A DNA stretch of 64,000 bases, from contig MQRK01217620.1 in the NCBI GenBank assembly GCA_001938485.1, positions 1 to 64,000 on the forward strand. The letters run 5' to 3'. The DNA is from Girardia tigrina (Eukaryota). This document shows positions 11,888 through 41,501 of the stretch, piece by piece. The notes below the pieces were generated by a model that did not search any database, was not told the origin of the DNA, and saw only the letters and a program-made list of their open reading frames with translations. A program made the translations under genes and the position numbers. The stretch's first letter is position 1. The number at the start of each line of letters is the position of its first letter.

Positions 11888-13066
11888 CTACAAATTGAAG
11901 GGCTTTAATATTGTAATATTAAAGGAAAATGCATATTCTTACGGTCAAGAAATCGTTTTTATGAAATCACTTCAACCACATAAAACACAGACAGACAAAG
12001 ACGAAAACGCACATGATAATAAAATATATTTAAAAGTGTGAAGGTCAATGTGAAATCACAACTATAGAAGCATCCCGAACCTTTTTAGGACCATCTGCTA
12101 TCACCTCCCCATAGTTTCGCAGTAGACAGAGCGTTAGAAGCGCGTCGAAGAAGCTAAAACTAACGTATAACGGAACAAAACACATAAAGTACCGACAGGA
12201 CTTACACAGTGATCCGAATTGAAGAGTCAGCCCTCCCCTGATAGAGCTACGCGAGAGACACCTGCAACAATAACGCGTCCGAAGATTGCGTCGCCCTAAG
12301 AAAAGTTATTAGCACTGAAGTAGATTTAAATTAATTAAAAACCAGACGAAAAATAACAAAGTCCCTTACTGGATTTTTCAATGAAGCTAGGAGGTCATCC
12401 GACCCTCCCATGAATGAGCATCGTGAGACGAGTCCCTGAATGAAACTCACCAAGTCCTAATACCTTCTTGAGCAGAGATATACCCCTGTGAAAATACGAA
12501 AATTAATTAACAAAAACAAAGCCCAATTAAAAACTCACCATGAATCAAGAATCACCCGAAAATTTCAGCCGAGTCATCGCTGAGGCAGCCGCACACAAAT
12601 GTCCAGATTTGAAGGTGTTCCATGACACACAGGCTAGGAACCTATAATAAAATAAAAAATTTTCAAAAATTAAAAATTCTTAAGAAGACACGCTTACTCG
12701 GCCGTCCAACCAGCATTGTAGAAGTTTCTAGACTTCTTGTTGACAGCAGGCGATTGGTGGAGTTGAGACACCCCTACACGAAACCTAGAATATAAAAGGG
12801 AATCACTTTTCCAGACAGTGCGCACTTATTGACCAACAATTTTATAAAAACATCTTGTTTGAGCTATTATTTGCACACACCAACCTTAAGCAGAATTTCA
12901 AACGCACATTTTGAACGATTCGAACAATTCACATTTTAAGAACATTTCCAAGAGCATTTCCTAGCGCTATTTTGGAGGTTCAAAACTACCATTTGAGAGC
13001 ATATCGAGAGTAGAAATCGACGTGGACGAACATTCTCCGGATCCAGGAAATAAAGCGAATTGTAAT

Positions 13067-15030
13067 TGTTCGGTTTCGTTATAATTGGAATTGAAAAATA
13101 ATTAAAGTTTATGTTTTTTTTGTTAAATTTAGAGTTTTCGATAAAATTAGAATTTAAAAATAAGTAAATTTTATTAACAAAAAAAGATAAAAAAATTTTT
13201 TTTATTGTTTTTAAATGAAAATTAAAACGATATATATATTTATATGGTTATATATATATATTGAAACGGACAAAAAAAATTAAGTTTGTTTTAACGTTTT
13301 AGTTAAAGTTAATCAGTGATATTTAAAAATCTCTCGGTAACTCCGGAGAATTTTGTCGAAGTTGTAATTGTCATATAATAAAAAAATTTGATGAAAATGG
13401 AAATCTCAGTGTTTCGATAACCTGTTTGAGAGGAGAGATTTGTATACGTAAAATATTTGTATCTTTAGAAAATACAAAAGAAGGATCACAATTGAGGAGA
13501 AAATTAGTCAAAAGAAGGAATCGGAGGCAGGAAATTTATCCAAATTGAAATTTAGAAAGAAAAGAAAACCAACAAGGGAGGAAACACAGATTCGTAGTGT
13601 CATGCAGCTTTAAGGTAATGTTTCTTCAGATAAAAATACACTCTGGAGATCGTCGATATTTGCGCCTTCAGTGGGATGACGAAGAGAACGAGGTGGTACG
13701 GTGTGGATCAAAAATCGGTCATGGGAAGGAATATAGTGAAGACGAGAGAGAAGTACTGTGCGAAAAGAGAGTTGATCCTCCTGCGTCGGATCAAGGGGGG
13801 AGTATGTTCGGTTTCGTTATAATTGCAATTGAAAAATAATTAAAGTTTATGTTTTTTTTGTTAAATGTAGAGTTTTCGATAAAATTAGAATTTAAAAATA
13901 AGTAAATTTTATTAACAAAAAAAGATAAAGAAAAAAAAATTTTTTTATTGTTTCTAAATGAAAATTAAATTGATATATATATTTATATGGTTATATATAT
14001 ATATATATTGAAACGGACAAAAAAAAATTAAGTTTGTTTTAACGTTTTAGTTAAAGTTAATCAGTGATATTTGAAAATCTCTCGGTAACTCCGGAGAAAT
14101 TTGTCGAAGTTGTAATTGTCATATAATAAAAAAAAATTGATGAAAATGGATGTTAATTTGGTTATTACCAAAGAATTATTCATGTATGAATTCAAAGAAT
14201 TCGATTATTCAAAGAATTATTCGATTATGACTTTAATGCGGATTATTTTGTAAAGACATTTGTAGTTAATCACATAATAATTCTCAATCGAAAATTGCAT
14301 GTCAAATTTTGTGAAGAAATTCATGATAAATGGTATGAATTAATGCGAATCTTTCAAGGTTGTAGAAACAGTATGGGAACGAAGTCTTGGAAAATAATCA
14401 CCAACAAACACGGTGTTAAACCGACCACTGACGATCACGAAAGCGACAGTGATTCGCGATTGCAGAGATACGACGTTTACGTTACTTCGAGAGTTCATGG
14501 AGAGTGTGCGNNNNNNNNNNNNNNNNNNNNGTTGAATTGTATCGCTCTCGATTACGATCTGATTTCGATTCCTGGGAGATTAATTCAACCGGATTATTTC
14601 GTCGGTGGCTCCTCAAGTGGTTCTAATGATTGCAAAAAAGAGATCAAGTGCTCAGATATTCCCAAATCGGTCGGTGCGCTCGGACGATTACTAAATGTAT
14701 GTCCTTGTATAATTATTGTGTTTATTTATATNNNNNNNNNNNNNNNNNNNNNNNNNNNNNNNNNNNNNNNNNNNNNNNNNNAAAAATATTATCAAAAATA
14801 AAAATAATAAAGATAAAATTAAAAATAATAATAACAATAATAACAAAAACAAGAATAAAAATATTAGTAAAAATGATAAAGATAAAAATAATAAAAATAG
14901 AAAATTTAGTCAAAACATAAATGACGATAAAAATGACATTGACGTAACCGAACACTTTCCTCCCACCTTGGTGACCCGCAGGGGGTCAATATATGATGAA
15001 AGCTTCCACTGCGCTGCTACTGCATCAACA
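13067..15030 (+). mobile_element. Internally deleted BEL/Pao LTR retrotransposon nested in E1
   Basis: TGTT...AACA ends; 5-bp TSD GTAAT (13062-13066, 15031-15035). 13067-13400 is repeated at 13805-14150 (truncated 5' LTR vs 3' LTR), with a purine tract AAGGGGGGAG just before 13805. Internal FKVMFLQIKIHSGDRRYLRLQW is a Pao RT motif. Confidence 0.85.
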
Positions 15031-15193
15031 GTAATTAATTTAGTTACTTTTATTTTTTTATTGTTGCAATAAAATTTTATGATGATAAGTTTTAATGTTA
15101 TTCCTTAATTTTAATTGATTTTAATATATAAACCGAGTTAATAGTTTAAGAGGAGTAGAAAGTAGTCGTCACCGCCGCCGTCCTTCGCTATAG

Positions 15194-15367
15194 ATGTCCC
15201 GAATCGATTTTCAAACGATAGAGCCGCCAGAGTTCGTGGGGGACCATACGGTCCTGATAATCGTTGACATAATGTCAATTTCAATGGAGGCGTTTATCAG
15301 AGGCGAACACAGCGAATCGTTCCTCGACGGACTAGATTCGCCCCTTCACGTGCAGCGAACAATATAG
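15194..15367 (+). CDS. 57-aa small ORF of the long-LTR family (E1 copy)
   Basis: MSRIDFQTIEPPEFVGDHTVLIIVDIMSISMEAF...DSP aligns without gaps to the N-terminus of the E2 ORF (M1,S2,Q7,H18,V20,I23,D25,S28,I29). Below the ORF-track cutoff; translated by hand. Confidence 0.6.
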   Translation: MSRIDFQTIEPPEFVGDHTVLIIVDIMSISMEAFIRGEHSESFLDGLDSPLHVQRTI

Positions 15368-18114
15368 CGACAAAGACGAGGGAAATTCTGCTCCGCCGAA
15401 ATCGGCCGCAAACCTTAACATTTCAATCTTATAAACCAAAAAATTTTATTGAACGTCGTTTTAATTGTTATTAAATCAATATTTAAATTATTTGATGTGT
15501 ATATCTTGATATGTTTTTGAGAAAGTTAATCGACTAGAGATAATGACGACCTTATGTATAGGAAACTTAATTCAGTAGAAAAAAACAATTAAGGCAAATT
15601 ATCCGAGTTGGTCGTGAACGTAAGCATAGCGCGACTTCGATAATAAGGTTCGATGCAAAAAATCGTGAATCTAGGCGAATTTCGATTCCGCGTTGCTAGT
15701 TAAAGGTTGAATTCCGATAATTTAAACAAACGTTTTTTTATGACGTTTATTTATTCATTTATATTTATTTTTATACGCTTATTTACTTTTAACTTAACTT
15801 TATACGTTTACTATTTATAATCGAATTTAACTGGTTTTACTGAAAATTCTGAATATAATTTTATAAAAATAGTTTTATTAGTATTTTAAAAGAAATCGTT
15901 TTATTTTTAAATCACCAATTCGGTAAGCGGGAACTGATTTGGGGAAACCAAGGTTTTAAAGAAATTTATGAAATAAGTAAATGTAGTTTAGGATTTAATT
16001 GGATTGTCACTTAGTAACTGAACGATTTACGATTTAATAACTCCTTGAGAATCGCTTCAGAAAGCGTATGATATGGAATTAATCTAAATAGAACTAATCT
16101 ATTTTATAATATAGGAATATGAAGTTGTATGAAGATGAGGTGAAAATCTTTGAGTAATATTCTTGCTACCAAACTATAGAATATTTCAATATTGAGGTCG
16201 ACATTTTGAGGTTTGAAAGTGGTTCCCAGAACTACCTATTAACTCTGAATTTTATGAGAACATAGTAGGGATAATAAGCATAGTTTAGAATCATCCCCGA
16301 GCGGCGCTCAGCTAGATGGGGGCCCATAGCCAATCCCGTCTTTATCAGAACCCGAAGGTCCTTCAAACCCGGCACTGCTAGGCAGATGTCGGGCGAGAAG
16401 AAACGTCCGACCCATTATATAAATAAATACAAATGAATATCAAAACAGACGTTTGGTTGTGGCTGACCCTTAATAGCCACTGGGGGCTCAAGAGCTTTCA
16501 AAAATGTTTATGCTCGAGAGTGTCGTGACAATATTCTGTCTTAAGAAAGAAAATACTAATAAAACTCACCGGATTAAAATTTATATTTATGAAAAAAAGC
16601 TGCTCAAATTAGACCTAATGAAATTCGAAAACATAAAAAAACAATAATATCTAAACAAATTTCCTAACTATTTAAATTTAATAATTGTTGATGTGAAAAA
16701 TAAATAGAAATGCACTTGTATAAATTTTCACGAAGATTTGTTTTTATTTTTTCAATAAATTTGATTTTTAAAATAGATTTTATTTAGAAAATTTGAAAAA
16801 TTTGTTAAAATTTTAAAACCATTGCGGGCCGCGAGTTTGACATGCCTGTTCTATATCATTAAAATCACTTTGGGGTAAACGAAATATCGTTTCCTCACTT
16901 ACCCAAATTTTAAATTCAACCCTATATGGTTAAGGGTTTCAACGAAAATCAGTTGTAAATATTTTTGATTTATAATTAATATTTTTATTTAAAAGTACTT
17001 CTTAGTCTTTTAATTGTAGTGTTATTCTATAAATCCCTTAGATGCGCCAACAAAAGTATAAATCGGAAGAGTTTATATTTTTAAATATTAAATTATATTG
17101 TCTATATAAATAAATAAAGAAAATAAGAAAAGTTTAGATATATCTAAAGAAAAGCAAATTTAGATTAGTTAGAAGAAATAACAAATAAAAGAATAAAAAT
17201 AATAAATAAAAATTATTTATAAAGAGAAAGTAATTAAAAAAATAGAATATAAAAGGTGTTGGAAGTGCTGTTTGAAAGCTAGAAATATAACATAAAGGAA
17301 AATAAACATAGTTGAGAAAAACTCACCCGATGACGAAAAATCGACCAACCGCCCCGCCACAAGCATGAAACACGGCAGGGTATCCGCGAGGGTGACCCAT
17401 CGGTGACTGAAGGACTCACGAATAGAGACAATAAACCTTAACAGGAAAAAGAATTAATTAAAACAAACCCGAAAAATAATAAAGTTTCTTACCGAAACAC
17501 CCTGTGGAGCTGAGAGATCATCCGACCCCCCCGCATAGCCCCTCGCGAGGCGGACCCCTGAATGGAACCCGTGGAACGCTGGTCGATCCTCGATAGAAAT
17601 TATTCACCCTTAAAGAAAAAAAATTAATTAAAAACCAGACAAAAAATAACAAAGTCACCTACTGAATTACCCAATAGGGTTAAGGGGTCAACCGACCCTC
17701 CCACGAAAGATCTTCGCGCGGGCAATCCGTGGACGAAACCCGCGAAGTCGTAGGACCACCCTGAGAAAAGTTATAGGCCCTGAAAGATCAAACAATTAAT
17801 TAAGAAAAATAGAAAATTAATTAATCTTACCATGAGTCAACCCAGAATCCGAAAATAATCGTCAGCTGACGAATCATCCATGAATCAGCAGCAGGCATGT
17901 TTCAGAGATTTGGGAGTGTGTAAAGACACAGGAGCATTGGATCCTATAATAAAATAAAAAAGTTTTAAAATTTTCGAAAAATTTTCGAAGCACACTTACC
18001 AGTCTAACCAACCAGCATCGCAGAAATGTCAGACAGTTGGTTGGCGAGATTCGGTTGGACAGAGGAGGACGACAGGATAGCATATCTACAATATAAAAGG
18101 AAAATCATTTTTAA

Positions 18115-18391
18115 CCTTCACTCTGTGCATTGAAAATTTTCCGGCGTCTGTGCATAGGGGTCAATCGTACCCCATATACATTTTGATATATTTTGTAAGG
18201 AAAACTAACAAAATTTTAGTTTTTATTTAAATTTTTATTAATTATAATAACTTATTAATAACAAAAGATTATTAAACTTTAATAAATGAAATTTATTAAG
18301 CTTTGGCAGTTTAATTTACTTGGCTCAATTTTTTTTAAATCGCTTTTTAAATAGACTGGGGTCCATTTGACCCCAATGCACAGAGTGAAGG
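18115..18391. mobile_element. piggyBac-type MITE inserted just downstream of the E2 TATA box
   Basis: Perfect 18-bp TIRs CCTTCACTCTGTGCATTG / CAATGCACAGAGTGAAGG; TTAA TSD on both sides; subterminal GGGTC...ACCCC palindromes. Confidence 0.9.
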
Positions 18392-18836
18392 TTAACGAAG
18401 TCGCACAATTTTTATAAACAAATCAAACCCACGTGTGCCGTTACAACAACTATTAGAAACCAACCGCAATCTCCCGAGCGATATTCAAAACAGAGTTTAC
18501 CGTACCGACAGACGTCCCGAACTCATAACTCGACCCACGACTGAACGCTTCTACGTACAGACGCATCGACTGGTGAAGATTATTAGGCACCGATTAAGCA
18601 GTGAATTTCCCAGCAGACCTTCGGATACCAACCAAATTGTAATTGTTTTATTGATAATCTTGTTGATTTTATTAATCTAAATAAACAAATTTAATACCGA
18701 TATTCCTTTAGTTATTAATAATTATTCAGAATGTTTAATTAATGATTAATTTACATACCGTACATCCGTTTTTATTGTAAAGTAGATCCAGTAGAGTCGT
18801 CGTTACAGTCGTCGTCGCCGCCGCTCCTTGCCGTAA

Positions 18837-19175
18837 ATGTCCCAGACTAGCCTTCAGCCGAGTAAATCGATCAGGGTCGAGGACGGTCACATTGTCATAA
18901 TGATCATTGATGCGGGATCGATACAATTAAACCATGTATCGGAGGCGACCGCGTTGAACGAATTTCCGGTAGAGCGAAGCCACGAGTTCACGTCCGAACC
19001 CGATAGTCCCGCTGCGAACAACGTCCCCAGCGCTGAACATCAACTGGTTATCATCGACGTGAAGTCGATATCGATAGATGACATGTCGGGACTGACTAGT
19101 TCCCGTGTAAACGATAACCCACCGATGTGGGGTGAAAACGTTCAAATCGGCGCCTGCGACCTTCAGAATATTTAA
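18837..19175 (+). CDS. 112-aa small ORF of the long-LTR family (E2 copy), motif duplicated
   Basis: Contains HIVIMIIDAGSIQL and HQLVIIDVKSISI; preceded by the conserved GTCGTCGCCGCCGC leader. Confidence 0.6.
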   Translation: MSQTSLQPSKSIRVEDGHIVIMIIDAGSIQLNHVSEATALNEFPVERSHEFTSEPDSPAANNVPSAEHQLVIIDVKSISIDDMSGLTSSRVNDNPPMWGENVQIGACDLQNI

Positions 19176-21757
19176 ACAAATACATTTTTTTACTATTCTA
19201 GGTCTTATTATGTTATGAATTTAGGAATTGTTATTGTTTCGAATTTAGAATTATTACAAAAAACTAAAATTATTATCGAATTTTATGAATGATTTAATTA
19301 ATAAAATTTCCATTTCTACTGTTATTATGAATTTTACCGGATTCGGAATTTTTAAGGAAAACTAAAGCTCTATGAATAGTTTAATTTAATTATGATTTTA
19401 GGAATTAGGATTATGATTGATCTAATTTTTGGAACTAATAGAATTCTATCATTTACTATAATTTCACAGGAAATAATTTTACTACATAAACCGTTTACTG
19501 ATCTTATAAAAAACCAAACTTCCACTAATTTTATTTTGATACTAATTTCGACTCCGACCGTTGTGAATAAAATTTAAAATTTCTATTACGGAACAACCTC
19601 CATTTCTATACAATGATAAATATTTCGTAAGTTTAAATGTGGGAGTCGACTAAAGAGGTTCGGGATTGAATAAAATCTTAAAGCAAAATTTAATTTTATC
19701 ACTGATGTCACAGCAATTTGGTCTTGATTTGGTGATTTGCGATGAATTTTGGTCTTATAATTGGATCTGACGATTTTTAACGTACAATTTTAATTTAATT
19801 CTAGGTTCGAGCGAATTTACCATCAACAACCTTATACTTAAAACCCGTGAGTGTTAAGTTTGCCGATGAAATTGCTATTAGCAGTGCCACTTGTTACAGT
19901 AAAATTAATTGACTGCAAATAGATTTACTAATATGAGTTAGCGCTAGTTATTATAATTCTCAATTGAAACCCTAGCAAATCAAGGTGATTCAATTAAAAG
20001 GCTAGTAGTTAAGGTAGCGATATGTATCTGAAAGGACCTCCTAATAATAAACCCTATGACAACAACATGTGATGATGGCAAGAATACATAATGGTACCAC
20101 GTTACAATTCGATCATTTGGGCAGATAGTAAGCTGTGCCATCTAGACAAGCATAAGTGATGCATTCACCGGAGGAATATACAAATATACAGAGTGGTAAC
20201 ATACTCTTATCGATACTGACCCAGGTGGGGGGCCCATAGCCTATCCCATCTTTAGCCGAACCCGAAGGCCCCTTGAGCTTGGCACTGCTAGGCAGATGTG
20301 AGGCAAGACATGAGGCGTCCGACCCTATATACAATGTCATTAAAACCGAAATAAATTTAGAGCGGGTTGTGGTTGACCCTTAACAATCACTGGGGGCTCA
20401 TGAGCTTTTAAAAATGTTTACACTCGAGAGGGTCGTGACAAAGGTCATTATTAATTATGAAAGATTCAGATTTTAAAGTTCAAAACCTAACAAAAGTTAT
20501 TTTGAAATTCGATCAAGAGTGAATCTGATTGTGCGTCTCAGTAGTTAATTGAAATTAAATCTGATTACGCGTCTATACTAAGACTATATTGCGAACTGTT
20601 TTGATCAAATTTCGATTGCGAATTCGATACTTAATAGTATAAAAGTCGACATTCACTAGAGACAAAAGCAGAAAAAAATCAAACTATTGAGTCGGTAGAA
20701 GAACGACTGAATACGACCAAAATTGAGATGCATAAACCCATATTCCTAATATATTATATCTCGTTATATAAATCACGCTGTAAAGTGTGAAACAAAAGTT
20801 TTAAAATATAAACAATCCGAGTTGTCGTTAAGGTTCTCGGTTTTTAAATATAAAATCGACCAGGGGTCAAATAAAATATAATTTTCTCTTTTACTTGTAA
20901 TTAAATCGTGAATACTAAAATATATTTTTATAAAGAAAAATCACTGTGTTCTATTATTGATTTTTATAAACATACCAAACACTCAACAAATAGTATAAAC
21001 AAATAAAATGCAAAATTGCGGAAGAAGCGGAGGTGGTCAATCTGGATAGCCTGCATTAATACAATTCTGTTGGTACAGCGCACTCTCCGAAAGACGCCCG
21101 GAAGCCTATGAAATCGATCGAAAACCGTAGATGTTAAATGGTTAAATTAACCCAGATTTCGAATAATGGCGATTTTGATTTTTCCTACACGGAATTTCAT
21201 GAAAAATTTCATGAAAATTTCAATATTATACTAATTTATTTGATAAATGACGATTTCTATCATTTATTTCTAATTATATTTCTAAAAATCAATTTAGGTT
21301 AAATTTGCAAAATTTCGTTATCATCTGATTCACGGTTTTTCAGTCAAGCTCAAATTTTACTATGATCAAATATATGCTGATAAAATGAGAAATATTAGAG
21401 AAAAATGTCAGTAAATCCGCGTAAAGTTGAGATAACTCAGCATAGTCCGCATCTGTCTGTACAGCGCCATTGCCGAAAGGCCCTGGGAGCCGATTTATTT
21501 GACTGACTGTTAAATATCCATAGAATTCAAAACAATTGATAATAAAGTATAATAATTACGATTTAAAATAGAAATTTTAATTTAAAATAATAAAGAAATT
21601 TAAATTAAAATAATTAGAAATTTTAAATTTTAAATAGAAACTTTCAAAGTCGAAAATTCAGCTCACCCGTCATGTATGATCGGTATTTTTCCAGTAATAG
21701 AATAAAATTTTTTAAGTAATTATTTTATAATTGTTTTTAAAATGTAAAATTGATTAA

Positions 21758-25395: not shown

Positions 25396-25485
25396 ATCAG
25401 AATAAAACAGTTTCTACCTATGAAATTTGTAAAACAGCATCGTTAATCGAAAAAGGCAATGAAGCGTATAAATCGTTGAATTTAC

Positions 25486-25939: not shown

Positions 25940-25984
25940 AACCAGTATATTTCAGAGCACTAGTTATCTAAAATTATATATATG

Positions 25985-27865: not shown

Positions 27866-27959
27866 AATATAAAAAGTTTAGATACAACTTACTTCATATA
27901 GTATTTTCTGTTCGTATTTGCTGTTTACAGTTCTAATACTGTGTTTATACAATAACTGT

Positions 27960-29172
27960 TCCATCTTTTCGTATCTTTTTTTGTATCTCACTATCAAATA
28001 CTCCATATACATACATTGTAATTGCTTTATCTTATGGAATGCCTTATGGAATTTTAAATTCAATTTTAAATTGCCTGTTCGTGGCATTTGTATTTGATCA
28101 ACATCAAAATCAGGTGTCAAGACAAATGTAAAGTAGGGGAATTTTGTTTTGAAATCATCCATAGTGATTCCATTATTCATATTTTTATTCACGAGTACCA
28201 TGTTCAATATTATAGACTTGTAGTATGCTTCAGTAAATTCATTCTTTTCAAAGTCAATTTTATATGAATCTATATAATCAATTCCTCGAGATAGGGTTAG
28301 GGAGCCAATATTACAGTTGTCAAATGCTGAGCAATATGATGCATAATATCGACTAACTTCGTTACTATCTTGAAATGTTACCAGCACAAATTTCGGTAAA
28401 CGTTCATCATTGAACAGATTGTCCTTATATTCACCATGTGATCCTTTAGAAATTGAAAACTGAATAGTTCTTGCTTTTCGAATGGGATATATAGAATTTT
28501 GATTATCAAGACACATAATATGAGCCAATCTTACTGATTCTGTTGTACGAACACGTCGTATTAATAACTTTGAACTCTCAATATATTTGAGGCATAATCT
28601 CTGTTCCAGTACCACTCCTTTCATATTGAAAGATAACTTTACTTTCATTTCGATGAATCTTGATTGTTATATTGATATTTGGTATGAGATATTTCGGTTG
28701 CTCAAAAAAGTCCAAATTTAACGGTCAGCATAATATCATCAAGGTTGATTTCTGCAACCATTTAACACTTTCAGTTGCCTCACCACACTTTTTCGTATCT
28801 GAACTTAGATTTAATGTAGTATCAATGATAGCCTTTTGATAATAACTATCATTAGTATCCTCAATCTTTGTATTGTTGAGAAACACGGTCATATCTTTAC
28901 ATAAGCAATGAAAGAGGTAATTGCTCTGGGTTAATTTGGAAATGTCAACAGTAATGTCTTTTCTTGATTCATCAACTGCTTTTATTTTAATGGTAAGCAT
29001 TATATCATTCATATCTATGTATTCATCTTCACTACCGATAATATCAAACTCTATGAGATTTATTATACCCACTAATACTATCCTTAGGGTAAATATCTTC
29101 AAAAGCATATGATTATATAACATCTTGTGGCGGAGCTGCACTAAATATGTCCAATTCCGATTTGGTACTCAT
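27960..29172 (-). pseudogene. Polinton/Maverick (adintovirus-type) major capsid protein, frameshifted
   Basis: MSTKSELDIFSAAPPQ, IEFDIIGSEDEYIDMNDIMLTIK, NYLFHCL..VFLN, DNLFNDERLPKFVLV, FTFVLTPD, RTGNLKLNLKF. Confidence 0.85.
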
Positions 29173-31642
29173 TCTGAGAATATATTTTTCATACGTTTTG
29201 TTTCTTTGTTTATATCTAAACCTTTCCTTTTTCTTCCTCCACCACCTTGATCCATTATTGAAACAGCCTCACGAAAAGCACCTTTAGCATTGGACTTAAT
29301 TTCTGGTAATATATCAGCAGCAGCTTCCTTCAATATGTTACGACACGACATTTATATCACCTTACATATAGCACAAAGAATAAGGGAATAGTCTAACTCG
29401 ACTATTCCCCAGTATGTTTAGATAGGCCCCATCTAACATAGTTAACCTCATGAACCTTAAAGGCTCAGAAATACCACGTCAGACGGAGCCGAAGACTCGA
29501 ACCACTGCCAGATGATCGTAACTCATGTGAGGACCTTAAGAACCCTATAAAATAACAGCATTATTCAAATACCTTAAATTAATTAATAAAATTAATTACT
29601 GGAAAGTGCAAGCGCACTAGAGACCCGTGAATCAGCCATCTGCTGACTTCCGCGACAGTTGATGATAGGCAGCCTCGGATCGCGAACCTATAAACAAAAT
29701 AAATCAGAAAAACAGAAAGACCCCTCCCAACGATACCTTTGTAAACATGATAACCACAGACGGACGTCGGAGAATTAACGACAACGGCAGCGACATCCTG
29801 GACGAGTAACCTATAGATTAACAGATGTCAGATAAACAGTCGTCAATGAAAATGTCTAGCTTGCAATGATGATTTCCCCCGTTCCTCCCACTGAAAAATC
29901 CTGTCACTGAATAGCGGATAAACATCTGTCACACCTGTTGTTGATATTTCGCTGTAGATGAGCAATTTTATCATACAGTAACGACCCCCTCCCTTCCATC
30001 TTATCACTTAACAGGATATCGGCGAACAAACACATGTCAACAGACACATACAGATTACCCGAACGCGTCGGACAACGTATGCGTCTAATTAGATATAAAT
30101 ACTCGATGCATCTTTGCATGCAGGCACACAAAAAACGCACCTTTTACCAATATTTACGCACTTTTATACTACAATTTTATTTTACAATTTATAATCATAA
30201 ATTTGAACTATTCCTGACGATTATATCACGCAATATTTACTATCTATCAATAAAACGGAACAATTAGTGACTAGCAAGTATGATCTGTTCTTGAGTTTAA
30301 TTTTAATTTTTTATTCTGTTTATTATATTCCATTCTCATTTGATTTATACTCTCATTCATTTTGTTATTATTATCTCTTACAAACATTAAATATAACTTA
30401 TTAAAATTATTCCTTTTATTTAATCCGTATTTGGTTAGGAGTTCAGTAGATTTTATTAGAGCTATGTACTGCTACTTGATTAATTAGAGGTTCGAAAATA
30501 TTGAAATTTATCGCTGGTCTCTATCTACCGCTCCATGAGGGGGTTCCGAAGAGGAGTTTTGAGATGAATAACGATCTTAGATTGAGTACTGATCGTGTGA
30601 GAGACGTGACGAAAAGGGGTAGAGGTATGACAGGTGAGTGTGGCACACTGGCAACAAGAGAGACCGCGATGTAAACGTCGAGGTCTTATGTGTACATAAT
30701 GTAGATAGAACTTCAAATAATATGTGGTAGAATGGTTTGTCGAGTTGTTTTATTTAAATTCCTCCTTAATTGGAATAATTCTAGTTTCGATGTAATTTCT
30801 ACACTAAGAATTATTAATAACTTTTCTTGAACAAAAATAATTCAGCGGATATGTGAATCCTAACTATCGTTCTAGTTTAGTTTGCGCTTAATCTCAATGT
30901 AAAAATTTATTTAAATGAATTACCTACGGAGTATTTCATGATGAATAATAGTAAACATTATATACACATTATAACTATAAACATATTCGAAAATCCATAT
31001 CTTAGTGATAACGTCGTGAATAAAATGAAGACTAAAATAAATTGAGAATCGTTATTATAATCAATGAAAACTATTGGTAGTGACGAAGAAGCTTTTGGAG
31101 ATGTCGAAGGTCGATCACGAAAGTTCGATTGTCGCCTATTTCCTCGAGGCTCTCTTCGTCTGACGTAATTAATAAATGAATACATCAAAGTACTTACGAA
31201 TAATGGAAAACAATATCAACCCCTCGGGCAACACCCGTTACTGGTTAGAACCCGAAAGCGCTCCAAAGCGCATAAAACTTGTTGATATGTGTGGAGCAGG
31301 CGCGTCCGTTCCCTTAAGTAACGAATTCAAAGCGTGCATGAGTTGCCGTTGAACTCAAAAAACGGATGGGGGCTCTGAGTCAACAAAAATGTTGTCGAAA
31401 GAGGGGAACGCGACAAATGCTTCAACAGGCTTTTTAGTACGATTCAAGATATTTTTACCAGCACGTAATATTGCTTTACCAGCAATCTTTGCTACAGGTA
31501 TACCGAATTTCCTCATTATAGGAATTGCCTATCTGCCTAATGTAGCCTTCCAATTACCTCCATACCGTTTACCTCTAAAGTATGGAAGATTACCACCCTG
31601 TAGAGGACCACAATACATTCGTACAATATCTCTATCAATCAT
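29169..31642 (-). pseudogene. Polinton basic core (pVII-like) protein split by E3 (31642-31416 plus 29335-29169)
   Basis: The joined halves read MIDRDIVRMYCGPLQGGNLPYFRGKRYGG...KPVEA-LKEAAAD...DQGGGGRKRK...NIFSE*, with QGG/GG motifs. Its stop overlaps the MCP ATG (ATGA). Confidence 0.7.
29336..31415 (+). mobile_element. E3: divergent 2.08-kb solo-LTR-like element
   Basis: TGTTACGA...CGCGACA ends; TSD AATA/AATG (1 mismatch). Removing it restores the Polinton ORF. TATAAATA at ~30094; 3' end shares GAACCCGAA, GCGTCCG and TGGGGGCTC with E1, E2 and E4. Confidence 0.8.
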
Positions 31643-31745
31643 GTAGTTTCTTGAAATGTAAAGTTAATATAGTTTTTGCTCCAAAACTAATCTCAATAGG
31701 CCTCCAACTATCATCACGAATATTAACTTCAATTTTGCTTATACA
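31635..31745 (-). pseudogene. Polinton minor capsid (penton) C-terminal fragment
   Basis: KIEVNIRDDSWRPIEISFGAKTILTLHFKK matches the usual penton end IEI.IRD..G.P..F..GK...TLHF. Cut off by a hAT end. Confidence 0.65.
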
Positions 31746-31751
31746 TATGGA

Positions 31752-32568
31752 TAGGGTTGCCAGATGTCCGGTTTTGAACCGGACAGTCCGTTAAGTCAAC
31801 TGGTTGTTCAGTATAAAAAAATTATAAAAACCGGACTTACATTTGACGGTATTTCTCCCGAAGCTTATTTCCACAATCTTCAAATATGAGGTAATCGTAT
31901 TTTTTTATTTTTTTGGTCGCTCAAAGTTTTGAAGGACAAATAAACATTCCTAAATGGTAATTTTTTTATAGTAGTGGGCTATGGATAAATTTATTTTGGT
32001 TTAATACGAAATACAAAATATTAAAGTATTAATTCAAAGTTTTCTGCTGGTGATAAAGGGATAAATTAAATAATAAATTTTGTGGTATTTAGAGTTTGAA
32101 CTATTAAGTGAAAACTTTAATATTAAATTTGTTTTTTTATAATTTTTTTTGCCTCAAAAAAACACATTGAAGCTGAAACCGTTGCAACTTCTTCTCAACG
32201 ATTAACATCTTTCTTTGCATCGAAAGATAATTCCCAAAGCGATGCAGTAGCCCTCGCTGAATTGTTGCATATTTATCATGGTGTAAAACACCATTTATCA
32301 TACTTGGCTCAGGAATGTGGAATTAAAATTATAAAACAGTCCTTTTCTGATTCTCAAATTGCTAAAAATGTTACAGCTGGAGGTACAAAAGCTTCGGCAG
32401 TTGTACAAAATATTTTGTACCCTTTTTCAATTGAACTTGTGATAGAAGATTTTAAAAACAACGTACCGTTTTCTATTGTTACGGACGCGTCGAACAAAGG
32501 TAATCGTAAGCTATTTCCTGTGGCAATTCAATTTTATTCTTTACAAAATGGATTGAGCTTTAAAATAT
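31752..32568 (+). mobile_element. 5' part of a hAT (Blackjack-like) transposon
   Basis: Terminus TAGGGTTGCCAGATGTCCGG; transposase fragment YHGVKHHLSY..FSDSQIAK..TKA..FSIVTDASNKGNRKLFPVAIQFY. Truncated at E4. Confidence 0.75.
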
Positions 32569-32569
32569 C

Positions 32570-34562
32570 AATCGGGACCGGAGCGTCTAACAATCAACCG
32601 ACGAGCAAGCGATTCATAACCCGAAAGCGAGAACCCGAGAATTTCCGGCGCTAGGACGAATACCCGATTCAGAGCTAAACTAACGCCAGGGGAACCCAAT
32701 TACGCGTTGATACACGAAGTCCGACTACATTCCTCCGCGACCGATTTTTCTACTGGGCACAATTGTTATTGTCGATGTAAATTTAATTTTTGTATTTATT
32801 TGTCGTTTTATTATGAATTTCAATAATTTATATATTTATGAGTTTTGTTTATTTAACATTTTATTTAATCATACTCTATAGAAGTAGCTTACCTTTTCAT
32901 AGAAAGAATTAAATAGCGCCGTCGCCGCCGCCGACCGTCGTTCCCGTTATGAATTCTCACGTTACGAATCCACTTATCGAGCGTCTAGAGAATATTCTGG
33001 GGCTCCTCCCCGAGTCCGAGGTAGATGAGAACAACAATGCATTCCGAGCCGCATTGCCACTAATTATTATCGACGTGAGGTCGATAGCCCTGAGCGAGAT
33101 GCTCGAGTCGACTGGGCCGCACCATTTAGACTAACGGCGCGGAAGCTGCCCATCAACATTATGACTTAATAAATAAAGTTTTATAAACCGCAGTTTAATT
33201 CTTTCGTTCGATTTAATACTTACTTCAATTTTGTAACTTTAGGAATTTTATTAGTGAATTTTTATAATGAATATTAACACAAGTTTTGTTATTGAGTCTT
33301 TAATATTAGTAGTGAACTTGAATATCAGTTTTATTAATGAATGTTCGAGAGTATTTAATAGACGTGAAAACAAATTTAATTCGTGAATATGTAAGGGTAT
33401 TTAATCAATAATAAGCGGGAGTATAAATTTGCTAGCGAGTGTTTAGAACTATTTTAGCGCAAATAAGAAGCTCGAGTGAATTTTGTATTTAGTTTTTTTG
33501 TGTTACTAACAGCTCCTCTCTTAATTATTTTAATCAGAAAGGTTATAAATACCTTGGTTCGTAAATCCCGCAGTAACTCATCAAACGTTATGAATATAAT
33601 CCGTTCAACGGCAAGTATCATTTAAAATATTACTTAAGGTCGTTGATTAAAGTAAGGCATTAAAACAAATGCGAAGTCAGTCAATTTTAAGAAATTCGTC
33701 TTTTACTGATAGTTTTTCTTTTGCGATTTGATTACTATCGAGAGGTATTTCATAAAAAAAATTTTTTATATAAATACATATAAATCATAAATTGAGAAGT
33801 TTTACAGAATATTCTAACATTGGCCGAACGGAACTTAAATTCAAATTATCGTTAAATTCTTCTAGTTTCCTATTTTATTTTAATGATTTTACCACTAATA
33901 TTTTGGCGGGCTTCTCGACTCAATTAACAATTGTTAAGAACCAAGCGATAATTCCAAGGTTAATTCAATTTAAAACTCAGACGTTATCTGAGTTTCATCG
34001 AGTCATGCAGGGAAAAGCGAATTAAAGGGTGGGTATACTCGTGAATAGTTTAACGAGTTAAGCAATAATAAAATTTCAAGAACCGCCGATGTTAAGGAAC
34101 AGATTTGACAACAGGGCGTGAGGCGTCTGCTGTCGATAGCTGACCGATAAGATACTGTCGTACAACAAATTGAGTGGTGCGGATCTATTATACGGTTATA
34201 GCGAACCTTGACAACTTATATGTTTGAGCGCGTAAAAGTACAGAAATATTATCTCATAAAACACAATAGTACCACGACACATAAAGGTATAAGATACATC
34301 ATCCCCGAGCGACACTTTGCTAGGTGGGGGGCCCATAGCCCATCCAATCTTTACCCGAACCCGCAGGCCCTTCAGACTCGGCACTGCCAGGCAGATGTCG
34401 AGCGAGAAGAGGCGTCCGACCCATAAATAACTATATTGCATCATTGAGTATTAAAAAGTAGCATACGAATAATATAAACTGAAATCGGGTTGTGACTGAC
34501 CCTTAATAGTCACTGGGGGCTCCGAGCAAACCAAAACTGCTACAAACAAGTGGGTCGTGACA
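32570..34562 (+). mobile_element. E4: 5'-truncated copy of the long-LTR family
   Basis: Contains the sORF (32949-33134) and the conserved 3' region ending GGGTCGTGACA. Confidence 0.8.
32949..33134 (+). CDS. 61-aa small ORF of the long-LTR family (E4 copy)
   Basis: LIIIDVRSIALSEM motif; GTCGCCGCCGCC leader just upstream of the ATG. Confidence 0.55.
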   Translation: MNSHVTNPLIERLENILGLLPESEVDENNNAFRAALPLIIIDVRSIALSEMLESTGPHHLD

Positions 34563-34595
34563 AATCTCACTGGTCCGTTCATCGGGCACGCCATT

Positions 34596-35114
34596 GAGGA
34601 CATCGGATTTTTCTTCGACCTGCATCATTGTGACACTCGGATCAATTTTAGGTGGAAGTGGAATATGAATTTGATATTTAGCATGGTCGATTTCCACTCT
34701 CATTCTCTCTTCAATGTCGGTTGGAGCGACAGTTTCAGCCAAATCAACGAAAAATTTAGCAAATTGTTTCACATCAATAATATAATTAGGTTCTTCACTG
34801 TCAGCATTAATAATTTTTGTGCATCTCATTTCTTGCAAAGGATGTCCGCTCGATAAACAAACTTTATCCGCAACCAAGTCCCATAAAGCCGGCGCTTCTA
34901 ATCCCGTGTCCGATTTCTCAACTCCCGCCAATTCATTGACTCGTTTCAAGATACTTTGATTATCATCTTCACATTGTTTTATTTCTTTACTATATGGCGC
35001 AGCACCATAAGTTTTCAACAAGGCAATAATATCTCCTTCATCGAGCGATTTAATTAGTTTTTTATCCTTATCATCTTTTAATTTTCTCTGATCATTTCCC
35101 AGATAATCAGGCAT
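34596..35114 (-). pseudogene. PSMC2: Truncated 26S proteasome ATPase subunit 7 (Rpt1) N-terminal copy
   Basis: [86 protein letters not shown]. Stops before the AAA domain, has substitutions at invariant residues and is intronless over this span. Confidence 0.9.
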
Positions 35115-35443
35115 TTGCTCAATAATATCTCTTTAAAAAATGGCTGCTTTTAACTCAAATTCAAAATATCACTGCACCAAAAAATTTATTTATAATCAAA
35201 TTAATAATATTATTCGATTAAAACAAAATCGAATTAACCGAATATTTTTTTCGGAAAAACAAATCAACACCAAAAAAATCATTATCATTTAATTCAAGTT
35301 ACTCCCAGATTGGCCAATCTATTTTTAGATTGGCCAATCGTGGGTCGTCTATTTATAGACCGAATTTTGAGTAGAATTCCGTTCCACAGTGTCATTAAGA
35401 AGAGTTTCAGGGTCACAAACATCCAATAGATATATATATATTC

Positions 35444-37280
35444 CGTGGTGTGGATTTCATTCTAGTTTATTTGGATGACATTCTCATCGGCAGCGAAAAC
35501 ATAGTGGAACACAAAACACACCTTGCAACTAGATTACAAATCCTTAAGACGAACGGGTTAAATCTCAATTTAAAAAAAATGTGAATTCAACAAAACTCAA
35601 ATCAATTTCCTTGGACATACGATCGAGAAGAATACAATCTATCCTATCAAAGAGAAAATCGAGGCAATAAATTCAATTCCACCTCCCAAAAATGTTCAAG
35701 AAATCAGAAGATTTTGTGGAATGGTAAACTTTTACCACAAATTTATTCCAAATTGTTCAAACATCCTAGCTCCACTCACTGACATGATTAAGAACAAAAC
35801 CAAACTCCAAATAATTCATTGGACAGAGGAATCGATCAAAACATTCAATCAAATCAAAGATGAATTAAATAACATCACAAAATTACATATGTTACAACCA
35901 GATAGTAATCTAACGTTAACCATCGAATTTTGGGATAGGTGCAGCTTTAACACAAACTCATGACAACCAAGAAGTTCCAATATCATTTTTTTCGCAAAAA
36001 CTTAACAAAACGGAAAGTCGTTACTCCACTTTTGATCGTGAATTGTTAGCAATACACAGATCAATCAAACACTTCCAAGATTATCTTGAACATCTAACTT
36101 TTACAATTAATACAGATCACAAACCTTTGACAAATGCATTAAACTTAAAAAATCCAAGTCCAAGACAACTTATACAAACATGTTACATCTCACAATTCAA
36201 CTGTAACATAAAATACATACCAGGTAAAACAAACATCGTGGCAGATTTTTTGTCCAGAAATATGGTTACTACAATAAATTTTTTCAATTTTTTAGACATT
36301 AAAGATTTAGAAAATAAACAAGACTCCACAATAATCGAATGTAAAGACCAATCTTTCATCTTAAAGAAAATTAAAAACATCTGGTACGACAAGTCAATAA
36401 CGGGAACCATTAGACCATTAATACCTGAAGAATTAAGATCTTTATGCATCAAAAACATCCACGAACTCGGACACTATGGTTTCAAAGCAACTTACCATAT
36501 ATTAAAACACCAAGTCTGTTGGAAAAATCTCAGAAGACATAAAACAATTCATTCGAAACTGTACCATTTGTAACAAGAACAAAATAACCAAGAGACACCC
36601 TATAAAAAAATCAATTACGTTGAATTAAACAAATTAGAACATTTACACTTAGATCTAACAGGTCCACTTCCACCAAACAGAAATTATAAATACTTATTAA
36701 CAATCATAGATAGAACAACCAACTGGTTCGAGATCATCAAACTCAAAGATATCTCTGCAAATTCCATCTGTAACAAATTCGAATCAGAATGGATAGCACG
36801 CTATCCACCACCAAAAAGATTAATTACAGATCAAGGGAAACAATTTTTATCAAAACAATTTCAAAATTTATGTGAAAAATTCAATATAAGGAAAATTAAA
36901 ACAACTTACAATCCACAATCAAACGGGAAAGTGGAAATTTTTCACAGATATTTAAAACAAACACTACGAACAAAATGCAACAACTCAGATTGGCTGGAGA
37001 CTTCCGGAAGTTTGTCTTGCACTCAGACTCAAACCAAATAGTCTTGATGATAAATCACCTTATGAGAAATTAGTTGGAGTAAGATTCAATTTTGAACTCT
37101 TTAAAAGAACAAGTGAAGAACATTCCAACAGCACTAACAAACAAACAGACGCAAAAACAGCATACGTCAAAATACAAAATACTAAGGGTTTTGACGATAG
37201 ATACGATGGGCCATACAATATAATTAAAACAGGCAAGAACACAGTAACACTCAATATAAACAACAAAGATAAAACGTAAA
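35444..37280 (+). pseudogene. Ty3/Gypsy pol remnant (RT, RNase H, integrase)
   Basis: VYLDDILI, RFCGMVNFYHKFIPN, RYSTFDRELLAI, TDHKPL, HELGHYG, HLDLTGPLP, ITDQGKQF, YNPQSNGKVE; frameshifted. Confidence 0.92.
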
Positions 37281-37345
37281 ATCTACGAAATATCAAACTA
37301 AACTAATACACTTATTGACACTCCGTTTTCCCAGGGGGGTGCTAA

Positions 37346-37992
37346 TGTAATAGTCCACCGGTAAAATTAGTGTATTTTTTTTAACTTTTCAACTAACGAT
37401 GTATTTTATTTTTTTTTACATGTGCTTTCATCTGACTTGTAACTCGTGTGATGTTTATAATTGTTCCATGTACTTTTATTTATTTGTTTCGTTTTTATTT
37501 CCTGTATTATTTTTTGTTTTTTATTTATTTATTTTATAAATGTCGAAGTCAGGAAGCAAAAGGAGGTCACCATGCAGAGGTCGCGAATTGAAATTATATA
37601 ATAAAGAAATAAAATTATATAATAATCATAACTTACTATGGTTATGAAAATTTAAAAATTCAAATTGATCAAACAATCAATTAAATTTCAGAATTATAAT
37701 TACCAGATAATAAGTTTATTATTCATTATTAACTGAATATCACGAGCGAATTATTTACTATTTTGATTATTTTTGGCGACCCAACGATAATTATACGTTA
37801 TTTACTTGTGAGACAGATATATGTGATTAAATATCTCAAGCGAATTATTTATTATTTTGACCAAAAAATCGAAAATCAAACAATCAGGAAACCCATCACT
37901 CTAATAACAATTATATTATTTTTTACTGGTGAACTATATTCATACTATTACGGTATTTTTGACTAATTCGTTAATTTGTTATACCAGTTACA
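37346..37992 (+). mobile_element. 3' LTR of the Gypsy element
   Basis: PPT-like AGGGGGG at ~37333 precedes TGTAA; candidate end TTACA at 37992; internal AATAAA. Confidence 0.6.
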
Positions 37993-38486
37993 TTAAACGA
38001 GTTCATTTGCAGTTGGATTATTTCATTATTATTTCGTTAAAAAAATATATATATAAAAACAATCAATTCGACTGAATATTAGGGGATTGATTGCTTTTAT
38101 AAAAATGAACGAGGTTATTTGTCATAACTTGAAAATCATCAAAAAATTCAGAAATTAATATTTCGAAAATGTTTATTTGGAAAGTGTAGTAAAACAAAGT
38201 AAAATAATCGATTGTAAATAACTGACGAAATTATTATCATAATCAAATAAGATTTTTTTTCCATTTAAATAGAGATTTTCAATTTCTTTATTTTTATTTA
38301 TATTTTCATCTTCGTTTATACGTAATTTTTTTGATTTTGTATTTGACACAATCGATTGATTTCACTCTCCACTGATTCGTTCTCTTTACCGAGCCTCATT
38401 TTACAATCAAACACAGCTCGTTTCCTTTTATTTGTGATTTTTTATTGTCACTTCTTTTTTTCTTTAAATTTTGCTTATTTTAAATT

Positions 38487-39960
38487 GCTACGCCGACTTT
38501 ACCGCGGCGACTTTACCGCGGACGACTTTACCGCGGGTGACTTTACAGCGGGCGACTTTACCGCGGAAAATTTACAACGAAATTGTGAATAAGTGAACAA
38601 TATCATCTAAAATATGAATAAAAATTTTTAATTATGTTATGATAAAACAATGAATCATACACGGGTTTAATTTTAAAACATAAATGGATAGAAAATTTCA
38701 GATCGACATGGCATTTAATTATTATTTTTAATATAAAAAATAAACAAAGAAGATACGAAAAATTAGTAAATTCCTAATTTAAAAAAAATTCAAATAACAT
38801 TCTAGAACAAATGAATAACACAGCAAAAAAATGTGATGTGTAAATAGAAGATACAAAAATATTAAACTGATATATTAAAATAATGGAATAGTAAATATAT
38901 ACTTCAATCCAAAAAGTTTAAATTATGAGCAACGCCTCTAAGATAATCCAATATTGGTAAATTAATGTATTGCTCAACGACACGTTCAATCCTCTCACTT
39001 ACTTTGGCATAAATTTGCGATGAGAATTGTGGGAATTCTTCAATTCTAAAGAGAATTTTAATGCGCTGCAAAATTAGTTGAACAAAATCTTGATCAGTAC
39101 GAAATTGATTTATCAAACTATAAACAGTTGGTTGATTGCAAGCGATAGAATTTTGAAACGCACGATGCCAATTTTCTATTGCATTGTTTGTGAGTGGTAG
39201 ATGAGAAATAACGCGGTCATATACATTCCAACACTGAATTGAATATCAAGGACGTAATCCTCGTTCTCCANGAGCACGGCCAATATATGTATCCTCAAAA
39301 TATGCAAAGACATCATCGAGTTCTGGATAATCATTAGAAAGATCAAGTAAAACCAAAAAGGCAGTGATAACATCATCCACAGGAACAAACGCTATATCCA
39401 TTATTGATTTCAGAATGGTTCTAATTTCATCATTGTTTGAATAGAGATCTGGAAGATTTGATGTTTCTTTTATTTTTTCCAAATTGATTGGTTCCTATGA
39501 AAAAAACAGCTTTTAATCCAAACGGATTTCCAGATTTTGAAGTAAAGAATTGAAGATTCAGGCTGAAAAAGTGAGAGAAAATTTTTTAGAAATTTATAAT
39601 ATTTTAAGGTATATTTTTAAAGGTATATTAACGTAAATGGAAAATTTTATTATAAATATTATATTTTAATAAAGTATTATNNNNNNNNNNNNNNNNNNNN
39701 NNNNNNNNNNNNNNNNNNNNNNNNNNNNNNTAAAGTATTATTCGGTAATAATGGCAAAAAAATATCTTAATTAAAAATTTTAAGAAAATTGAATTTATTT
39801 AATTATTTAATATTAATATTATAAATTTTTAATATTTTTTTCTGAAAAACTCCGCGGTAAAGTCGTCCGCTGTAAAGTCACCTGCGGTAAAGTCGCCCGC
39901 GGTAAAGTCGTCCGCGGTAAAGTCGCCGCGGTAAAGTCGCCGCGGTAAAGTCGCCTCACC
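38487..39960 (-). mobile_element. Internally deleted MULE/Mutator transposon
   Basis: 9-bp TSD TTTTAAATT (38478-38486, 39961-39969). TIRs are built of tandem CGACTTTACCGCGG units. Transposase C-terminus AFVPVDDV..YFEDTYIG..WNVY..TNNAIENWH..YLRGVAHN. Confidence 0.92.
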
Positions 39961-40039
39961 TTTTAAATTATATATTACTAATATTATTTTTATTTTTATT
40001 TAATATTATAAAAGTAAAAATTGCTTCAAGTTTTTAGAT

Positions 40040-41501
40040 TCGGACTTTAGGTAATTTTTACAAGGGGAAGTATAGCAAAAATATAGTGCATAGCTCGGCT
40101 GTTCGGACCTTACGTCCGTACTAATCAGAAGTTACTCTCTGATAAAATTCTCATCGGCGGGATACATTCCCGAACTAAATACAACTTCGGAACCTTCCTC
40201 GTCGGGATTATTGCTTTTACGATTATTTTGGGGCATAGCTAATGGGTGACGACGACTGGGACGACGACAAGACCTAACTTTACTCGCTGAAACTAAAATA
40301 GGTCAGAATTTATTTATTAAATATATATTAAAAACAATTTACAAATTTATACATTTATTGCAAGACTATTAAAATATAAAATTCAATACGAAATCCCGTA
40401 AAATTACATTAGATTTAAATTTGATCTCCGGAGGAACGAATTCGCAAGTGGCTTGGGTTTCGTAGAATGATTCTCCAAATTAAATTAATCTGATCGTTCT
40501 CGTCAAGGTTCCTGTTGAATCTTGCTGTCTTTAATTTATGGTTCTCGAATTTGTGTCTTTGAATTACGTCTCAAATTTTCGTCTTCGAAATACGTCTCGG
40601 CTTTGTGATCTATAAATAACTGTCGTTTTTTGTTGTCAGATTTTGTGGGCGCTCTGATGAAAAACGATTCTTCTTTTATACTGTAGAGAAAAATGTTTGT
40701 TGCTTCTTCTTGGCCAATCAGGTTCTGCCAAGTACTCGTCTGAAAATTCTGCGATGCTGGTTGGTCGGGCTTGACGGTATGTCTTCAAAATATTCTTAAA
40801 ATTTTTATTTCATTTGCTTGCTGGTGTACCGCCGCACACTCTAGAATTTTTAGAGTTCGTGTGTGGCCGCGTCACCGATGATTCATGTAGAATTGTCAGC
40901 TGGTTGCTATTCTTGGAGTTACGGCTGACTCAGGGTAACTTTGTTTTTCTTAATTAATTTTCATATCTTTACAGGGTTATATCTCCTTTCGGAAATCTGT
41001 CAGTGCTTCACGGGTTCCACCCAGGGATTCACTTCACGAGGGACTACACGGGGATGGTCGGTTGACCTCCTAGCTCAAATGGATAGTTCGGTAGGCGACT
41101 TTATTTTGAGTTCATTTTTAATTAATTTTTGTTTCTCTCAGGATTCATACCCCTTCTCACAGCTCTTCCACACATTAACGGTTCGTCTCCAGGAGTGCGT
41201 CTCTTCTCACTCTATCTGAGGTGGGATGATTGTCCGTCTCTTTCTATAGGGTAAGTTTTTATTTGATCTCGTCTGATTTTCTTTATATCGTATTTTATAG
41301 CTCTACTGCGGTGTCTGCGTCATTTTATCAGTCTACGAGGGTTCGGGATCCTCTTCACAACACTAGTGGGATCAACCAAACTTTGTATTGAGCTTTTTAA
41401 GTATATGTATCGTATCAAAACCATTTTCTTCTTTTCTTATATAACGTAGTCGTATATTTAATCCTAATACTGTCTAGTTCAATGAATTTCAGACCGCAAC
41501 A
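40040..41501 (-). mobile_element. E5: inverted, 3'-truncated copy of the long-LTR family
   Basis: TATAAAAG on the minus strand at ~40680; exon/intron array on the plus strand homologous to E1/E2; disrupted sORF from 40236 (..RE*LLISTDVRS); candidate 5' end TGTTGC at 41501. Confidence 0.75.

Follow-up and report, generated by a model that had tools for sequence, protein, structure and literature searches.

The first 64,000 nucleotides of Girardia tigrina contig MQRK01217620.1 (assembly GCA_001938485.1, forward strand; hereafter the window) are AT-rich (21-37% GC) and crowded with transposon debris, among which hAT, piggyBac-like, Tc1-like, gypsy-type pol, MULE-like and mariner pieces can be recognized. 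Five related elements, E1 to E5, lie in this stretch, and they constitute a real, modular family that probably derives from the long terminal repeats (LTRs) of retroelements. A preliminary description had reported five such elements between positions 11912 and 41501, and these outer coordinates are indeed the 5' ends of E1 (11912) and of E5 (41501, on the minus strand). The copies and their parts are as follows.

E1, plus strand, 11912..16530: complete copy, 4619 bp as it stands, flanked by ATAT at 11908-11911 and 16531-16534
E1, plus strand: array 11912-12790; TATA box 12791-12799; leader to ~13065
E1: long spacer 13066-15148, containing a 738-bp tandem duplication and two N gaps
E1, plus strand: GC-rich module 15149-15430 with an open reading frame (ORF) at 15194-15364; spacer; 3' module 16290-16530
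E2, plus strand, 17257..20440: complete copy, 3184 bp, 2903 bp net, with AAGG flanks on both sides
E2, plus strand: array 17257-18091, made of a tandem ~170-190-nt unit; TATA box 18092-18100; leader to ~18650
E2, plus strand: GC-rich module 18773-19178 with ORF 18837-19172; spacer; 3' module 20200-20440
E3, plus strand, 29336..31415: complete, distant copy, 2080 bp, with AATA/AATG flanks
E3, plus strand: array 29336-30090, with a less regular GC/AT pattern; TATA-like sequence 30094-30100
E3, plus strand: GC-rich island 30508-30696; 3' module-like sequence 31247-31415
E4, plus strand, ~32575-34562: 5'-truncated copy, left bound approximate, with the leader end and an AT spacer at the left
E4, plus strand: GC-rich module with ORF 32949-33131; spacer; 3' module 34298-34562
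E5, minus strand, 41501-39961: 5' part; array 41501-40690; TATA-like sequence 40680-40672; leader; GC-rich module 40295-40069

When the window was compared with itself by BLASTN, the five elements were found to be mutually related with weak similarity: the array together with the TATA region is 63-67% identical across 530-606 nt in E1, E2 and E5, and the 3' module of ~250 nt is 72-78% identical among E1, E2 and E4. Two nhmmer profiles, one of the 3' module and one of the array, were made from alignments of the unmodified copies, and the former matched the last ~170 nt of E3 (E = 3.9e-6). The putative membership of E3 is based only on this profile match, on compensatory base pairs and on layout. 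The general plan reported previously was recovered: an array, a TATA box, a GC-rich module with an ATG, AT-rich spacers and a ~250-nt 3' module are all present. As to E3, which had been described as keeping the array, the TATA box and the 3' structure, the layout, a variant of the TATA box and the compensatory pairs of the 3' end were recovered, and its array proved less regular. The 3' module of E5 was not found past the MULE-like insertion that interrupts this copy.

The whole copies were inserted independently, as their flanks differ and the elements are nested. Neighboring copies in the same orientation lie 726 bp (E1 and E2) and ~1.2 kb (E3 and E4) apart and share about 65% identity or less. 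This arrangement suggests nested insertion or preferred insertion near earlier copies, E1 and E2 each having its own duplication.

The complete copies had been given net lengths of ~2.1-2.9 kb, and these values hold for E2 (2903 bp after removal of a nested 277-bp, TTAA-flanked miniature inverted-repeat transposable element, or MITE, and its 4-bp target duplication) and for E3 (2080 bp). E1 also contains coding-like, possibly foreign, sequence, and its spacer holds the N gaps 14511-14530 and 14732-14781; at the nominal gap lengths one frame is open across the former and zero across the latter. Another gap, 39681-39730, lies inside the MULE-like insertion. Gap lengths are estimates and the gaps were left unfilled, and every module used in the argument is free of them. 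Within the same E1 spacer, segments 13067-13401 and 13805-14150 form a tandem duplication of 94% identity, and the intervening 403 bp finish with a purine run; the duplication may be real or may be an assembly effect beside the gaps. A nested miniature LTR element was considered for this duplication and set aside, since its start is native family sequence, as judged by E2 and E4.

The 5' ends start with TGT in four of four cases, and the 3' ends finish with ...GACA, also in four of four. The latter are set by homology, because similarity breaks off at ...GTCGTGACA in E1, E2 and E4 and, in E3, at a sequence diverged from it. The 5' ends of E1, E2 and E5 lie at a consistent distance, 174-237 nt, past the last alignable array sequence. 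The 4-bp flanks match perfectly in E1 (ATAT/ATAT) and E2 (AAGG/AAGG) and in three of four positions in E3 (AATA/AATG). AAGG followed by TG occurred once within the 5.5 kb searched, and its frequency across the window is 0.14 per kb; from hexamer frequencies, the chance of a matching duplication in a 300-nt zone was estimated at about 0.04 for E2 and about 0.2 for E1. Thus, of the TG...CA ends and 4-bp target-site duplications claimed for the three complete copies, the ends stand throughout and the duplications stand for E1 and E2, that of E3 being partial. Terminal inverted repeats were sought, and the only identical run is of 3 nt (TGT/ACA), with local scores of 9-10, when shuffled sequences averaged 7.3-7.7 and reached 14-16 at most. 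Likewise, when the first 400 nt were compared with the last 400 nt in search of terminal direct repeats, the scores did not exceed the mean of shuffled sequences. At the left end of E3 (29336-29350), 12 of 15 letters agree with the inverted 3' terminus of the E1 type, a longer inverted similarity than in E1 or E2.

The combination of TGT...ACA ends and 4-bp duplications with terminal inverted repeats of no more than 3 nt and an absence of terminal direct repeats makes up an integrase-type signature, which a solo LTR explains better than do the other readings tested. Because of these integrase-type ends lacking terminal inverted or direct repeats, we consider it fairly likely that E1-E5 are solo LTRs, three whole and two truncated, left behind by several lineages, related but long separated, of a large LTR retroelement of the Ty3/gypsy type.

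The same ends and duplications would also be expected if E1-E5 were whole non-autonomous units moved by a retroviral-type integrase and never part of an LTR pair, being either LTR-derived lone propagators or non-autonomous relatives of Ginger elements, which have TGT...ACA ends and 4-bp duplications. Ginger DNA transposons and the non-autonomous LTR elements TRIM and LARD resemble the E family in their 4-bp duplications, TG...CA-type ends and non-coding bodies, and differ from it in the terminal inverted repeats of the former and the terminal direct repeats of the latter, both of which were looked for and not found. The promoter-like module and the conserved terminal modules carried by the units themselves, and the absence from the window of any copy linked to an interior, agree with such lone movement. 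However, DNA transposons of this kind have inverted repeats of tens of bases, whereas here they amount to 3 nt with scores within the shuffled range; no mechanism is known that copies an LTR-less unit by LTR-type reverse transcription, and five copies are too few to show an absence of pairs. We judge integrase-moved lone units to be quite improbable.

Upstream of the TATA box, the proposed solo LTRs carry an array of tandem 170-190-nt units, and the arrays of three copies (E1, E2 and E5) could be aligned. Viewed on the antisense strand, the array consists of four AT-rich segments (52-56 nt in E1, 21-27% GC) alternating with blocks of 103-120 nt and ~50% GC; among the segment-plus-block units, two are tandem copies of one another. 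GT and AG are in register at eight of eight segment borders in E1, at seven in E2 and at five in E5, where a further two lie 4-5 nt out of register and the remaining one is missing. The segments combine GT...AG borders, a length typical of the host, an AT-rich interior and a pyrimidine run before the AG. Short introns of planarian genes peak at 45-85 bp (PMC13594981), and the 52-56-nt segments, which fit this peak, look like introns. Each of them carries AATTAATTAA, which occurs 14 times in the window where 3.8 would be expected, 9 of these occurrences lying in the arrays.

The array had been described as an antisense exon/intron array. Its intron-like part is borne out by these signals; a coding role of the exon-like blocks is not. 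When the GC-rich antisense blocks were tested for coding one by one, stops were present in nearly all frames, block lengths differed by non-multiples of 3, and no three-base periodicity of substitutions was detected (p = 0.48-0.95). An ATG beside the TATA region is conserved on the antisense strand, and no conserved frame follows it. Because the blocks lack an open or conserved frame, the AT-rich segments resemble introns that belong to a non-coding RNA rather than to a gene.

The array could nevertheless have begun as a host gene fragment, with exons and short introns, that was captured in antisense by an ancestral element, tandemly duplicated and then decayed. The sharp GC alternation between exon-like and intron-like blocks, the intron-typical lengths and the presence of gene fragments in this transposon nest, e.g. 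a proteasome subunit piece, agree with a capture, and antisense is the only orientation in which captured introns survive RNA-mediated copying. However, besides the missing open frame and three-base periodicity, no block had a protein match, and conservation of the AT-rich parts equals or exceeds that of the GC-rich ones (67-69% versus 59-62%), which is the opposite of what decaying exons and introns would give. We therefore regard a captured gene as unlikely.

Spliced-leader RNA genes were also considered as a source of the array units and were discarded on the basis of an Rfam comparison without match. On the minus strand, 54 nt (11888-11941) separate the last GTAAG of the E1 antisense array from the AG before the start codon of the adjacent hAT gene; this intron-sized interval, which spans the E1 terminus, could be a coincidence or could allow read-out splicing into the hAT neighbor.

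The TATA box TATAAAAGG is found at 12791 in E1 and 18092 in E2, with variants in E3 and E5, and 12 of the 20 ungapped columns in the alignment of the TATA region are invariant, so that the candidate promoter element claimed previously is conserved in sequence across copies. The leaders that follow (~235-250 nt in E1, E2 and E5) can hardly be aligned, and they have in common a terminal AATTGTWATTGT-like motif close to AATAAA; the latter hexamer was seen by eye near the leader end in four copies and is common in AT-rich DNA. In the GC-rich module, a GTCGTCGCCGCC-type motif precedes the ATG in four copies, and the GTCGTCGYCNCC pattern occurs eight times against 0.13 expected, always inside the four GC modules. 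The small sense ORFs of this module, with 57, 112 and 61 codons in E1, E2 and E4 (determined by tool) and about 34 in E5 and 10 in E3 (by eye), are barely alignable between copies, and neither a Pfam match nor a homologue was found for them. The E2 ORF yielded zero candidates among 5.8 billion proteins and, among 1.84 billion representatives, a single marginal match that was repetitive (E = 1.9e-4) and lacked a meaningful Pfam match. With no conserved frame and no relatives, the micropeptide proposed earlier is not supported, and these ORFs are most likely incidental.

GC-rich islands and AT-rich spacers with splice-like borders flank the TATA box on both sides. This arrangement would also be expected if E1-E5 were non-mobile, segmentally duplicated host loci, each a pair of divergent spliced genes for non-coding RNAs or small proteins around one promoter, with 4-bp flanks arising by chance, and the flank motif of E1 is indeed common. 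However, the flanks differ at every copy, the copies lie in or against other transposons, and the ORFs are not conserved. Moreover, TGT/ACA stands exactly where similarity ends at four 3' ends, and AAGG followed by TG is unique in the 5.5-kb zone, at the distance from the array that would be expected. Duplicated host loci are thus highly improbable.

At the other end of the proposed solo LTRs, the 3' module appears to retain its predicted helices through compensatory changes, with 93.7% of the cells paired. Sixteen compensatory pairs were counted, versus 5.8 +/- 1.8 in shuffled alignments, none of 500 of which reached this number, and 0-4 in slid controls. The consensus fold is more stable for the sense (-47.2 kcal/mol) than for the antisense strand (-34.9 kcal/mol), and G-U pairs likewise favor the sense strand. 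A predicted long-range helix pairs an internal TCCGACCC site with the terminus of the element. This motif, found five times versus 0.32 expected and confined within the window to arrays and 3' modules, is, together with AATTAATTAA and GTCGTCGYCNCC, far commoner than chance. Rfam returned no match, either for the whole window at gathering scores or for E2 at E<=1. An exact 19-mer of the 3' module had four matches in metagenome contigs, all attributable to chance given the GC-rich contigs and the profile scoring, and zero in viral contigs. An independent short interspersed element or MITE as the origin of the 3' module was rejected, since in three copies the module has the same orientation and lies 0.9-1.2 kb past the GC module, and the duplications span the whole unit.

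Several observations weigh against the solo-LTR assignment or its parts. The window contains no near-identical pair of copies in the same orientation around gag-pol with a primer-binding site and polypurine tract, and no primer-binding-site-like start follows the 3' ends. The only pol piece in the window, a Ty3/gypsy-type fragment listed below, has no E copies of matching orientation on its flanks. What follows the leader, with a net length of about 1.1-2.1 kb (E3, E2), is unusually long for a U5 region. Homology does not fix the 5' ends, and the duplication of E1 is by itself weak evidence, because ATAT followed by TG is common (0.64 per kb across the window) and ATAT is frequent in AT-rich DNA. 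The comparison covers five copies, all from one window. For the structured 3' end that had been claimed, the compensatory changes are favorable and the folding energy is not, being no better than that of shuffled sequences (z = -0.15 and +1.48 for the minimum free energy); the covariation is drawn from four sequences, and the structure was predicted from those same four. The antisense introns and the 3' structure are plausible candidate features of the family.

The copies are ~35% divergent, yet they share the same plan and two of the three whole ones have perfect duplications, from which we infer that much of the divergence probably arose between active lineages and not after insertion. As solo LTRs, they could be read as follows. 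The first ~0.8-0.9 kb would be a U3-like region of tandem 170-190-nt units ending in the conserved TATA box, the next ~240 nt an R-like leader ending near the AATAAA signal, and the remainder a long U5-like part, the last ~250 nt of which are the best conserved. The terminal helix with the internal TCCGACCC site may serve reverse transcription, integrase recognition or both. The AT-rich parts of the array would be short spliceosomal introns, on the antisense strand, of a non-coding spliced transcript starting beside the TATA region, as in HeT-A and TART. Antisense is the only orientation that lets introns persist through an RNA-copied life cycle.

Other features of the window that bear on the copies or adjoin them are the following.

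MULE-like DNA transposon, 38487..39960, unstranded: 9-bp target duplication 38478-38486 / 39961-39969; splits E5
Ty3/gypsy-type pol fragment, 35574..37276, plus strand: end of the reverse transcriptase, RNase H, and the zinc and core domains of the integrase
hAT (Buster-type) transposase gene, 10102..11887, minus strand: decayed, with at least four frameshifts and one stop
MITE, 18115-18391: 277 bp, 18-nt inverted ends, TTAA duplication, piggyBac-type; nested in the E2 leader
26S proteasome subunit 7 (Rpt1/PSMC2) homologue, 34545..35114, minus strand: N-terminal ~190 residues; adjoins the 3' end of E4

The terminal inverted repeats of the MULE-like element consist of about seven tandem 15-mers, and its transposase-like ORFs had no Pfam match. 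The pol fragment is 5'-truncated and carries two frameshifts and one in-frame stop. A distance of 25 nt separates the ATG of the hAT gene from the 5' terminus of E1, and a hAT-like ORF adjoins the left edge of E4. The proteasome subunit piece, which may be a gene fragment or a pseudogene, is intron-less, and the ATPase part and the rest of the gene are absent from the window; its best matches are flatworm proteins (72-77% identity), followed by arthropod ones (70-71%). As the one conserved host gene sequence in the window, it points, softly in view of the arthropod values, to a flatworm and perhaps a planarian host; a human origin of the contig is excluded. Upstream of E3, at 27878-29351 on the minus strand, three long ORFs (60, 138 and 256 residues) form a chain, the first ATG of which is located within E3, 16 nt from its 5' end. 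The chain had no Pfam match, nor did the 256-residue ORF match any entry of the PDB; these ORFs may resemble a widespread uncharacterized invertebrate transposon protein. A ~335-bp tandem pair (50346-50999, 80-87% identity) and a dispersed 105-nt repeat (45896-46002 with 50861-50964) are unrelated to the E family. A tRNA scan of the window found none.

Among known systems, the giant Ty3/gypsy elements Ogre, of plants, and Burro/GYPSM1, of planarians, are among the closest in general features: LTRs of Ogre measure 1.9-6.5 kb, Burro is more than 30 kb long overall and its interior reaches 25 kb, and their solo LTRs are likewise multi-kb, TG...CA-ended and bordered by a short duplication, with internal tandem repeats, a promoter inside and, for Burro, a flatworm host (PMC6431247). 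The E copies differ from them in being very long downstream of the leader, and the comparison is one of general features, not of sequence. A literature search found no paper on planarian solo LTRs. To our knowledge, an antisense intron-like array has not been described for LTRs of the Ogre/Burro type.

HeT-A, TART and L1 produce multiply spliced, non-coding antisense transcripts from internal promoters (PMC2615633). Bidirectional transcription within the element, several short antisense introns and the lack of a long ORF (PMC2615633) have candidate counterparts in the E family, which is known from sequence signals only. Those elements are, in contrast, non-LTR retrotransposons whose splicing was demonstrated by cDNA, whereas the putative E introns sit in the tandem unit of an LTR-like repeat. 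Antisense genes are also present in Retand, Grande, RIRE2 and HTLV-1 (PMC11963269). The antisense ORFs of the three former and the HBZ gene of HTLV-1 resemble the putative E unit in being an antisense expression unit in a reverse-transcribing element, often beside tandem repeats (PMC11963269), but they code for conserved proteins and are for the most part located between pol and the 3' LTR, whereas the E unit lacks a conserved frame and lies inside the repeat. The suggestion in the preliminary description that the architecture may be undescribed is weakened, as precedents exist both for spliced antisense non-coding RNA and for antisense genes. The family is interesting and not categorically new, because spliced non-coding antisense transcripts of retroelements were already known.

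In the most far-reaching reading, to which we give only a small chance, these LTRs or LTR-derived mobile units would have kept a genuine bidirectional expression unit across deeply diverged lineages. It would consist of a promoter centered on the TATA box, a non-coding antisense RNA that is spliced several times and whose introns are spared by lying antisense to the copied RNA, a sense leader that is also spliced, and a terminal structure, in RNA or DNA, pairing the integration end with an internal site repeated in every array unit. The family would then provide the first case of an LTR containing an intron array of its own, and the unit might feed piRNA-type (PIWI-interacting RNA) self-regulation. 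If the segments are unspliced, E1-E5 would be an ordinary nest of old solo LTRs, useful mainly for the repeat annotation of an AT-rich genome. If they are truly spliced, the terminal repeat of a retrovirus-like element can carry introns and preserve them over long evolutionary times, and flatworm genomics would gain a defined promoter/antisense unit that may be related to the PIWI-based control of LTR elements (PMC8532177).

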